A stretch of 64,000 nt of DNA from the NCBI GenBank assembly GCA_002269645.1, contig NIVC01000942.1, positions 1 to 64,000 of the forward strand, written 5' to 3'. This document shows positions 52,678 to 58,506 of the stretch, in pieces. Numbering within the stretch: position 1 is the first letter of the stretch; the number at the start of each line of letters is the position of its first letter. Below the pieces are notes generated by a model, which made no database searches, was not told the DNA's origin, and worked only from the letters and a program-made list of their open reading frames with translations. Source of the DNA: Macrostomum lignano. Its lineage: Eukaryota. A program made the translations under genes and the position numbers.

Positions 52678-55600
52678 GCAACTGAGACCTGCGGCGGCAG
52701 CCCGACAGAGTTCGCCGACCTGCTCAGCTCGGCGCGTCTGCTCAGGGCCATACGCGACGAGCTCGGCTATGCGCGCCCCGGCGCTATTCAGGCGCGCTGC
52801 ATCTCTCTGGCGCTGTCTGGCGCCGATCTGCTATGCCAGGCGCCGTCCGGCAGCGGCAAGTCAACCGCCTGCGCTGTGGCCGTCACCCAGCGATTGCTGA
52901 CGCTGATTGATGAAGCCAAAAGGCTCAGCCCAGCCTCCGCTGATTTGGAGGGGAATTCTGTCGCCACTCGCGCTCTGGTGCTCTGTCACAGTCGGGAGCT
53001 GGCTGTGCAGACTGTCCGACAGCTGCGCTGCCTCTCCTCTCGCTGTCCGGGACGTCGGCCGCGAGTTGCCGAATTCCTCGGTGGCGCTCCGGGCAGGTAG
53101 CTGGCTGATTGAGTTATTTGGGCTTCTTGAGTGAGATGCTACGGATGTCTTCAGATTGTTTATTGGCGCTTTAGAAGGCTGTATAAGATAGCTGAATGCT
53201 TAAAAGTGTACCGCGATGCTGCAAAACTCGACTGGATGCCTTAAAACTCTGCTGAATGCTTGGAAACTCATCTCAATGCTTGGAAACTCAGCTGGATGCT
53301 TGGAAACTCATCATGATGCTTGGGAACTCAACTGGATGCTTGGAAACTCATCCGATGCTTCGAAACTCAACTGGATGCTTGGAAACTCAGCTGGATGCTT
53401 GGAAACTCATCTCAATGCTTGGGAACTCATCTTAATGCTTGGAAACTCATCTTAATGCTTGAAAACTCATCTTAATGCTTGGAAACTCATTTTAATGCTT
53501 GGAAACTCATCTTAATGCTTGGAAACTCATCTTAATGCTTGAAAACTCATCTTAATGCTTGAAAACTCATCTTAATGCTTGGAAACTCATCTTAATGCTT
53601 GGAAACTCATCTTAATGCTTGAAAACTCATCTTAATGCTTGAAAACTCATCTTAATGCTTGGAAACTCATCTTAATGCTTGGAAACTCATCTTAATGCTT
53701 GGAAACTCATCTTAATGCTTGGAAACTCATCTTAATGCTTGGAAACTCATCTTAATGCTTGGAAACTCATTTTAATGCTTGGAAACTCATCTCAATGCTT
53801 GGAAACTCATCTTAATGCTTGGAAACTCATCTCAATGCTTGGAAACTCAGCTGGATGCTTGAGAAACTCATCTCAATGCTTGGAAACTCAGCTGGATGCT
53901 TGAGAAACTCATCTTAATGCTTGGAAACTCAGCTGGATGCTTGAGAAACTCATCTTAATGCTTGGAAACTCAGCTGGATGCTTGAGAAACTCATCTTAAT
54001 GCTTGGAAACTCAGCTGGATGCTTGAGAAACTCATTTCAAAGCTTGGAAACTCATCTCAATGCTTGGGAACTTAGCTGGATGCTTGGAACTCATCTCAAT
54101 GCTTGGGAACTTAGCTGGATGCTTGGAACTTAGCTGGATGCTTGGAACTCATCTCAATGCTTCGAACTCATCTCAATGCTTGGGAACTCAGCTGGATGCT
54201 TGGAACTCATCTCAATGCTTGGGAACTTAGCTGGATGCTTGGAACTCATCTCAATGCTTGGAACTCATCTCAATGCTTGGGAACTCATCTCAATGCTTGG
54301 GAACTTAGCTGGATGCTTGGAACTCATCTCAATGCTTGGGAACTTAGCTGGATGCTTGGAACTCATCTCAATGCTTGGAACTCATCTCAATGCTTGGGAA
54401 CTTAGCTGGATGCTTGGAACTCATCTCAATGCTTCGAACTCATCTCAATGCTTGGGAACTCAGCTGGATGCTTGGAACTCATCTCAATGCTTGGGAACTC
54501 AGCTGGATGCTTGGAACTCATCTCAATGCTTCGAACTCATCTCATTGCTTGGGAACTCAGCTGGATGCTTGGAACTCATCTCAATGCTTGGGAACTCAGC
54601 TGGATGCTTGGAACTCATCTCAATTCTGGGAAACTCTGTGTTTTGCTGTGTCAAAAGGTACCTGAAGGCTCGGAAAGGTACTTGATATGCAAAGTATGCA
54701 GGCTTGGTTTACGCATCTCAGACATGCAATTGAGACGATGCACTCCCATCGCTTTTTTCATCAAGACGAGACGCTGCCGCTGCTGCCTCCCGGCCGGACA
54801 TCGCAGTCGGCTCGCCTGGCCGCCTGCTGGACTTGGCACGCCGGGGTCACCTGCGCACCGACCAGCTGCGAATTGTTATGCTGGACGACTGCGACCAGCT
54901 GCTGCTGCGCGATGAGGCGGTGCAGGCGCTGCTGCTGGCACCACCCGATCGGCAGGTTCTCATGTGCTGCACCACCATCAGTGCGGCTGTGAGTGCCGGG
55001 CCTGACAGACAGACAGACAGAGACAGACAGACAGACAGACAGACAGACAGACAGAGACAGACAGACAGACAGACAGACAGACAGACAGACAGACAGACAG
55101 ACAGACAGACAGACAGACAGACAGACAGACAGACAGACAGACAGACAGACTGACTGACTGACTGACTGACTGACTGACTGACTGACTGACTGACTGACTG
55201 ACTGACTGACTGACTGACTGACTGACTGACTGACAGACACCGAGACAGACACAAACACACAGTAAGCCACACAGGCAGGCAAGACTTATATTTCCTAAAC
55301 CTCACAGATGCGGCAGCAGTGCCTGGAGCTGATGCAGAATCCGCATGAGCTGTGCCTGAGCGATGAGGCTCAGCTGGCTCCGCACAGCCTCCTGCAGTAT
55401 CGCGTGCCGATTGCAGAATGCGGCTACAGAGCTAAGAATGCTCGGCTGCTGAAGCTGTTGCGAGTTCTCGAGTTTGAACAGGTGCACCTGGCTTTAGTGA
55501 TAATCTGGGGAGTTGGCATTCTGCCTACTTCTAATCGTGGTGACTCATTTCATTGAGCCACTGCAAACCTCCGCAGGCAATCGTATTTGTCAATTCCCCG

Positions 55601-58506: not shown

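Follow-up and report, generated by a model that had tools for sequence, protein, structure and literature searches.

A candidate pseudo-helicase of DDX39/UAP56 descent in Macrostomum lignano

INTRODUCTION

The UAP56/DDX39 helicases are among the most conserved of all DEAD-box proteins, and their ATPase cycle is central to the loading and release of export factors on mRNA. In DEAD-box enzymes the Glu of motif II activates the attacking water, the SAT of motif III connects motif II with motif VI and ties hydrolysis to unwinding, and the Arg and Asp of motif V, together with the His and the last Arg of motif VI, complete the network around the gamma-phosphate and between the domains. When the motif II Glu, SAT or the His/Arg of motif VI is changed, ATPase activity in each case falls strongly or is no longer coupled to unwinding. 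These role assignments draw on the reviews by Linder and Jankowsky and on the structures of Vasa, eIF4AIII and Mss116. Here we describe a helicase-like gene of the flatworm Macrostomum lignano in whose product several of these residues are replaced. The gene is located at positions 52678 to 58506 (forward strand) of a 64,000-nucleotide stretch of genomic DNA (contig NIVC01000942.1, positions 1 to 64,000, assembly GCA_002269645.1), which is referred to below as the window.

A working model for such a protein is provided by eIF4AIII, which in the exon junction complex is closed on RNA with ATP and serves as a binding platform; its structures 2j0s and 2hyi were among the good matches to the predicted fold of the window protein. 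The active site of eIF4AIII is fully canonical and is locked by its partners MAGOH and Y14. Unlike in this partner-locked helicase, the block in the window protein would be intrinsic, as predicted from its sequence. A degenerate protein has been described in Caenorhabditis elegans, where MUT-15 is a DEAD-box-like pseudohelicase with tandem RecA1-RecA2 domains and degenerate hydrolysis motifs that acts as a scaffold and RNA-binding platform; it also lacks the Q motif, has NNAE in place of DEAD and is unrecognisable by sequence (bioRxiv 10.64898/2026.09.04.749402). MUT-15 thus demonstrates that DEAD-box pseudohelicases exist and can function. The window protein resembles MUT-15 in carrying degenerate ATP-hydrolysis motifs on a tandem RecA fold, but differs from it in keeping the ATP-binding motifs and a clear DDX39 ancestry, so that it would represent a much milder and younger case. 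No description of a pseudohelicase derived from DDX39 was found in the literature searched, and the sequence of the window protein is already public: GenBank and UniProt list it in mis-modelled form and uncharacterised.

RESULTS AND DISCUSSION

Family assignment and predicted fold

Both halves of the helicase core were recognised above the Pfam gathering thresholds, DEAD (PF00270) with 80.0 bits (cut-off, 26) and Helicase_C (PF00271) with 74.2 bits (cut-off, 23.5). The best match among PDB chains was human DDX39B/UAP56 (250 bits over residues 7 to 407, with ∼35 to 39% identity), followed by DDX39A, Sub2 (213 bits), eIF4A (160 bits) and DDX6 (153 bits). An AlphaFold2 model, built on an alignment of 76 proteins, reached a predicted local distance difference test score (pLDDT) of 90.9 and a predicted template modelling score (pTM) of 0.89, and placed the two RecA domains (RecA1-RecA2) in a closed arrangement. 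Confidence was low only for the first 6 residues, for part of a 17-residue insertion that follows motif I and for the last ∼35 residues. When the model was compared with known structures by Foldseek, UAP56 (8enk) came first, with a TM score per target of 0.94 and a root mean square deviation of 2.1 Å, and all the top matches were DEAD-box proteins, with deviations of ∼2 Å.

From the score ranking, the predicted fold and the Cys kept in the DDCD sequence of motif II, the gene is judged to be a DDX39/UAP56-type paralog. The same assignment had been made in a preliminary description of this DNA, drawn up without database searches, and DDX39B indeed ranked first both by sequence and by predicted fold. 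The protein has in common with DDX39B/UAP56, DDX39A/URH49 and Sub2, the DECD-box helicases of the transcription-export (TREX) complex, the two-RecA architecture and the Cys that marks the subfamily in motif II (D-x-C-D), and it is colinear with UAP56 through the blocks LLRAI, SPGR-L and VLEF-Q-IVFV. It lacks the acidic N-terminal extension of UAP56 (∼45 residues), has the 17-residue insertion after motif I and an acidic C-terminal tail of 38 residues, and its divergence exceeds by far that of any UAP56 ortholog.

Retained and altered motifs

The motifs kept by the protein comprised F12 (52711 to 52713) and Q38 (52789 to 52791) of the Q motif, motif I (APSGSGKS, 52840 to 52863, with Pro at the second position in place of the UAP56 Lys), motif Ia (SRELA), GG, motif Ib (SPGR), motif IV (IVFV) and Q306/R309 of QxxR. 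All the residues F12, Q38, G58, G60, K61, S62 and D180, involved in ATP binding, were in place, as were the last Asp of motif II, T210, T327, G333, R357 and R360.

The canonical hydrolysis and coupling set, for its part, failed at every one of its motifs. Motif II was DDCD (54884 to 54895) instead of the DECD of UAP56 (E181D), and motif III was CTT (54968 to 54976) instead of SAT (S208C and A209T). Motif V read TDLYAFGLQ (55739 to 55765) versus a consensus of TDxxARGxD (R332F and D335Q), the corresponding residues being AFGLQ here and GRGMD in UAP56. Motif VI, interrupted by intron 4 (55826 to 55831 plus 58240 to 58257), was YRIGRAAH versus the consensus HRxGRxGR and the HRVARAGR of UAP56 (H356Y, G362A and R363H). 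The columns affected are 80 to 100% conserved among the 76 relatives. Every state listed in the preliminary description, whether retained (Q, Walker A SGSGKS, Ia, GG, Ib, IV and QxxR) or changed (DDCD, CTT, YAFGLQ and YRIGRAAH), was found in the residue alignment with DDX39B.

Distribution of the changes

The conservation test was based on 76 diverse DEAD-box proteins, recovered by an exhaustive HMMER search, in whose alignment 45 columns reach a conservation of at least 90%. The candidate kept 36 of these columns and deviated at 9, compared with a median of 1 deviation for the other proteins. Three of the deviations were replacements of Thr by Ser (GKT to GKS, TRELA to SRELA and TPGR to SPGR), and the six non-conservative ones were E181D in motif II, A209T in motif III, R332F and D335Q in motif V, and H356Y and R363H in motif VI. 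Thus, non-conservative losses fell on 6 of the 14 columns located in motifs II, III, V and VI and on none of the 31 columns elsewhere (Fisher's test, p = 3.7e-4), all 31 of the latter being either kept or changed only from Thr to Ser. Retention of 36 of the 45 columns, despite an overall identity of 27 to 39% to any relative, departed strongly from uniform decay (p = 5e-8).

The pattern of motif loss does not look like random decay. The earlier claim of systematically degenerate catalytic motifs was well founded, the losses being confined to the motifs for hydrolysis and coupling while the fold and the positions for ATP and RNA binding were kept. Since the pattern at the conserved columns lies so far from uniform decay, we infer that past selection maintained the fold together with the elements for ATP binding (Q motif, P-loop Lys and first Asp of motif II) and for RNA binding, and released the hydrolysis and coupling network.

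Gene structure

The coding sequence (CDS), rebuilt from the raw sequence, is carried on the forward strand by five exons and has a joined length of 1338 nt, corresponding to 445 codons plus TAG, with a GC content at third codon positions of 0.69. There were no internal stops and no frameshifts in the window copy, and all four introns were of the GT...AG type, so that neither intron loss nor stops or frameshifts mark it as a pseudogene across its 445 codons. Exon 1 (52678 to 53096; codons 1 to 139 plus 2 nt) contains the Q motif, motif I, the insertion relative to UAP56, motif Ia and GG. Exon 2 (54766 to 54988) contains motifs Ib, II and III, and exon 3 (55308 to 55481) encodes the linker and the beginning of RecA2. 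Motif IV, QxxR, motif V and the residues YR of motif VI are located in exon 4 (55577 to 55831), while exon 5 (58240 to 58506) provides the IGRAAH of motif VI, the end of RecA2 and the acidic low-confidence tail, and ends with the TAG at 58504 to 58506. The preliminary description, in which the open reading frame (ORF) was considered intact over five exons with canonical splice sites, was correct as to the exons, the splice sites and the uninterrupted frame; the start codon, however, is absent from the genomic sequence (see below).

The junctions between exons 1 and 2 and between exons 2 and 3 are also used by the spliced GenBank CDS PAA70478.1, which derives from another genomic copy. An alternative in-frame donor 15 nt past exon 3 would insert VHLAL and is used in the UniProt model A0A1I8F2H9, from the ML2 assembly; homology to UAP56 favours the donor at 55481. 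A processed pseudogene was ruled out by the presence of introns, and contamination was ruled out by the introns and by the synteny with Nup50, which holds in two assemblies. No second helicase copy was found within the 64-kb window.

Each of the three long introns holds a tandem array of its own. Intron 1 (53097 to 54765) consists mainly of a satellite array with a 20/40-nt unit (53224 to 54636, 35 to 71 copies), intron 2 (54989 to 55307) contains (GACA)n/(CTGA)n microsatellites (55004 to 55251), and intron 4 (55832 to 58239) carries 34 copies of a 24-nt unit (57167 to 57986); intron 3 spans 55482 to 55576. The copy numbers of these arrays are unequal between the two genomic copies. Intron 4 also harbours a 1193-bp insertion (55913 to 57105) that begins with TG, ends with CA and is flanked by the short duplication CTTC/ACTTC, resembling a solo long terminal repeat. 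No further copy of this insertion was found in the window, and it is missing from the Mlig_3_7 copy, being thus polymorphic between copies.

Origin of the start codon

No genomic ATG was found in frame with the helicase ORF before residue 176, the first in-frame Met, which lies past motifs Q, I, Ia and Ib. Upstream, the frame is open only to 52645, with an in-frame TAA 33 nt before 52678. An additional upstream exon carrying the ATG was considered and rejected: the ORFs in 51352 to 52677 are not UAP56-like, and tblastn with UAP56 yielded only chance matches upstream. As read from the sequence, the initiator must come either from a spliced leader (SL) or from a further exon.

The proposed SL trans-splice acceptor is the AG at 52676 to 52677 on the forward strand. 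PAA70478.1 starts at the base that follows it (position 10001 of NIVC01001234.1, equivalent to window position 52678), and A0A1I8F2H9 also joins here. The Mlig_3_7 annotation was derived from RNA-seq transcripts that had been split wherever an SL site was mapped, and ORFs were called only after removal of the leader (PMC5730564). A 5'-partial CDS starting at the acceptor is the expected appearance of a trans-spliced mRNA in a pipeline of this kind, the trimming being what would make the deposited helicase protein look "partial." The M. lignano leader is CGGTCTCTTACTGCGAAGACTCAATTTATTGCATG, with a 3' end of ...TTGCATG (PMC8629364), and, according to PMC12582326, which cites Cheng et al. 2006, the reported flatworm leaders all end in ATG, potentially a start codon. 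Joined to 52678, the leader gives ...ATG GCA ACT GAG..., in frame with exon 1. Because the ORF has no ATG of its own, the RNA-seq-based CDS starts at the acceptor and the ATG of the leader is in frame, we infer that the start codon is supplied by SL trans-splicing at 52677/52678; the gene would accordingly rely on the AUG of the leader for its translation.

Canonical paralog and public copies

A canonical UAP56 gene, whose existence had to be confirmed according to the preliminary description, was found elsewhere in the genome. This gene, Mlig-ddx39b (RNA1509_632/Mlig030213.g1), and human DDX39B are reciprocal best hits, matching with an e value of 0 and a score of 716. The Pfam scores of Mlig-ddx39b are 134 to 141 for DEAD and 93 for Helicase_C. 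The window gene scores lower throughout (∼250 bits versus DDX39B PDB chains, 80 for DEAD and 74 for Helicase_C). Since the canonical gene is separate and its cloning primers are absent from the window, the window gene is, on this comparison of sequences, an additional divergent paralog and not the UAP56 ortholog. Mlig-ddx39b is a stringent neoblast gene, and its RNA interference (RNAi) kills all worms within three weeks. Its transcript is annotated TRANSSPLICED, that is, as SL-associated and trans-spliced; the two genes would thus have in common the genome, the subfamily and, by inference for the window gene, the association with the SL. The transcript RNA1509_10881 (DDX39B, e = 2e-69; neoblast class) was considered as a product of the window gene and left unassigned; it clusters with the canonical gene.

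Matches with more than 40% identity, sought by a word-indexed search of 5.8 billion clustered proteins and by HMMER among 1.84 billion representatives, were limited to three records, all of them from M. lignano: PAA70478.1 ("hypothetical protein BOX15_Mlig026976g1, partial"), from assembly Mlig_3_7, and the UniProt entries A0A1I8GSZ1 and A0A1I8F2H9, from the older ML2 assembly. No mention of Mlig026976 was found in the searchable literature. The end of the Mlig_3_7 scaffold NIVC01001234.1 and the window are colinear over a span comprising the Nup50-like gene and the helicase, and the helicase exons of both copies are ∼99% identical, with 10 substitutions and four 1-nt deletions in NIVC01001234.1, all of the latter in C/G homopolymers. 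Since the Nup50-like ORF of that scaffold also carries such deletions (two, within 7150 to 8760, versus four in the helicase CDS, within 10001 to 14957), they are most likely homopolymer errors of long-read assembly, and for the same reason the frameshifts in other copies were dismissed as proof of pseudogenisation, although a genuine frameshift may exist in some of them. As a consequence of these indels the public proteins are truncated or frame-shifted, the deposited Nup50 and helicase proteins being shortened to 197 and 221 amino acids, respectively. For its part, A0A1I8F2H9, which corresponds to window positions ∼50370 to 58300, joins the helicase to the sense ORF of Nup50 and to translated antisense ORFs from that locus, is frame-shifted in places and is regarded as an artefactual fusion model.

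Neighboring nucleoporin gene and proposed transcription unit

Upstream of the helicase and on the same strand lies a Nup50-like nucleoporin ORF of 463 amino acids (49960 to 51351) with a C-terminal RanBP1 domain (Pfam Ran_BP1, 4.8e-11), and its counterpart in NIVC01001234.1 carries the NUP50 domain (PF08911). The nucleoporin neighbor mentioned in the preliminary description is therefore supported by a RanBP1 domain in the window and a NUP50 domain in the homologous copy. The stop codon of this ORF precedes the helicase acceptor by 1326 nt. A pattern scan of the interval revealed a single AATAAA (52252 to 52257, forward strand), the likely poly(A) signal of this upstream gene, separated from the acceptor by ∼400 nt, partly a purine-rich simple repeat. 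Operon-like units comprise 15% of M. lignano genes (PMC8629364), and from this arrangement the helicase is probably the second gene of such a unit, with the Nup50-like gene as the first.

Proposed function

The account that we favor, and to which we attach about even confidence, is that the locus would encode a lineage-restricted probable pseudo-helicase derived from DDX39, the product of an intact and fast-evolving gene, which would have kept the fold, ATP binding and RNA binding and have its hydrolysis impaired. The gene, Mlig026976 in Mlig_3_7, would have arisen as a duplicate of a DDX39/UAP56 gene at the DNA level, since introns are present, and would have evolved very fast with its frame kept. 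It would be transcribed downstream of the Nup50-like gene as part of the operon-like unit, the AUG of the leader giving rise to a protein of 446 amino acids beginning M-ATETCGG.... This protein would retain the binding of ATP (Q motif, P-loop Lys and first Asp of motif II) and of single-stranded RNA (Ia, GG, Ib, IV, QxxR and the Thr and Gly of motif V), whereas the changes in motifs II, III, V and VI would strongly impair both the hydrolysis of ATP and the link between hydrolysis and the steps of domain opening and RNA release. ATP-dependent closure on RNA, followed by very slow or no hydrolysis, would then generate a long-lived RNA-bound platform, a scaffold or a competitor for the partners of UAP56 in nuclear messenger ribonucleoprotein (mRNP) metabolism. 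Judging from the residues kept and lost, long-lived ATP-dependent RNA binding, or a role as scaffold or competitor, is most likely, rather than that of a turnover enzyme.

A more specific and speculative proposal, and a rather improbable one, would be an ATP-locked RNA clamp co-transcribed with the nuclear-basket protein Nup50 and acting at the pore in the export of mRNPs or of precursors of PIWI-interacting RNAs in stem cells or the germline, perhaps by retaining TREX-type cargo or by competing for it; such a clamp would be the natural, encoded equivalent of partner-locked eIF4AIII. If the pseudo-helicase account is right, the gene would constitute a natural separation-of-function variant of UAP56 and would add a protein of DDX39 descent to the few DEAD-box pseudohelicases known, in an animal for which RNAi, transgenesis and a lethal phenotype of the canonical ddx39b are already available. 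If, instead, the gene is a relaxed, decaying duplicate, the finding would be an ordinary one.

Selection and alternative explanations

Several observations weigh against a functional pseudo-helicase. The helicase copies of the window and NIVC01001234.1 differed by nine nonsynonymous changes and one synonymous change (pN, 0.0091; pS, 0.0029; ratio, 3.2). The neighboring Nup50-like gene showed 8 of each, and the 9:1 of the helicase departed both from 50:50 (p = 0.011) and from this 8:8 (Fisher's test, p = 0.045). Divergence in the exons (0.75%) equaled that in unique intron sequence (0.68%). No ortholog outside M. lignano was recovered by exhaustive HMMER search among 1.84 billion representative proteins, the public copies of the gene carry single-base indels, and the readable parts of the published supplements gave no expression class for Mlig026976. 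As to the transcript, the acceptor CCAAG differs from the preferred trans-splice motif [T/C]TNCAG, a motif present at about 44% of M. lignano trans-splice sites, and no AATAAA or ATTAAA was found in the 5.5 kb past the helicase stop (58507 to 64000), a region made up for the most part of a 22-nt satellite. Finally, residual ATPase activity is possible from the residues present, given that Glu to Asp is a conservative change that keeps the carboxylate and that R357 and R360, two of the three arginines of motif VI, remain.

Part of this evidence is what would be expected of a duplicate whose constraint has been relaxed and which is turning, or has lately turned, into a pseudogene, with the motifs as early casualties and its transcription a by-product of the Nup50 unit, an explanation that we consider a serious though lesser possibility. 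The 9:1 ratio, the equal divergence of exons and introns, a constraint weaker than that on the Nup50 neighbor, the missing genomic ATG, the lack of orthologs elsewhere and the indels in other public copies all agree with it. The 9:1 ratio also fits neutrality (p = 0.24), in a sample of only 10 differences between two copies of one species, and ten differences are too few to tell fast evolution, adaptive or relaxed, apart from a recent loss of function. Against a pseudogene, none of the nine replacements fell on a conserved column, and five of the nine were located in the disordered tails at the N and C termini, 11% of the protein in all (p = 0.0013). This clustering may mean that the folded core is under some constraint. 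Nonsynonymous density in the core was 0.45%, compared with 0.7 to 1.3% in unique non-coding sequence, a difference that is not significant. The ORF of 445 codons and its four canonical introns have moreover remained intact at ∼35 to 39% identity to UAP56, the predicted fold is a confident one, and the indels of the other copies are homopolymer deletions of a kind also present in the Nup50-like gene, which is surely functional. The stop-free frame at this degree of divergence, the four pairs of splice sites and the 31 of 31 non-catalytic positions kept or changed only from Thr to Ser suggest long-term selection on the ORF. A loss of constraint, if there has been one, must accordingly be very recent.

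The pseudo-helicase account must also be set against that of a working RNA-dependent ATPase, slow or specially regulated, such as a divergent tissue-specific isoform of UAP56 in which the altered motifs are tolerated or compensated. The Lys of Walker A, the Q motif, the first and last Asp of motif II, T210, T327, G333, R357 and R360 are all compatible with activity, as are the carboxylate retained in E181D and the closed DEAD-box arrangement of the AlphaFold2 model. Nevertheless, the six non-conservative changes at positions at least 90% invariant among the 76 proteins all surround the gamma-phosphate and the coupling network, and mutagenesis of the motif II Glu, of SAT and of the His/Arg of motif VI in DEAD-box proteins has cut or uncoupled the ATPase, which makes a working enzyme unlikely. 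Less probable still is that the helicase exons form the 3' part of a Nup50-helicase fusion, produced by cis-splicing from the last Nup50 coding exon to 52678. A0A1I8F2H9 does join ...RRIVPFL, in frame, to ATETCGG... by way of the 52678 acceptor; in the window, the last codon of RRIVPFL is followed by a GT. This donor (GTCCGG) is, however, weak compared with the consensus GT[G/A]AG, the N terminus of A0A1I8F2H9 consists of translated antisense ORFs and frame-shifted stretches, as in a poor ab initio model of an error-rich assembly, and the RNA-seq-based annotation separates the Nup50-like and helicase genes.

Other features of the window

Downstream of the helicase stop there is a 2.4-kb array of a 22-nt unit (58523 to 60883), followed by arrays of 20- to 22-nt units (61196 to 62448) and by an open frame of 413 codons on the forward strand (62502 to 63740; Amidohydro_1, 2e-9), probably part of the next downstream gene. 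In the remainder of the window, exon-like ORFs at 3007 to 4078 (forward strand) matched Lig_chan-Glu_bd (3.8e-14), the ligand-binding domain of ionotropic glutamate receptors, and, weakly, the channel domain. Retroelement fragments were located on the forward strand at 9848 to 10324 and 42608 to 43246 (RVT_1, 1.6e-19, plus a weak RNase H match). A very large, strand-asymmetric tandem array of a 12-nt unit (GTCACT twice) occupied positions 17901 to 22814, with ∼410 copies at 94% identity, and further CT-rich arrays were present at 12939 to 13801 and 24049 to 25485.

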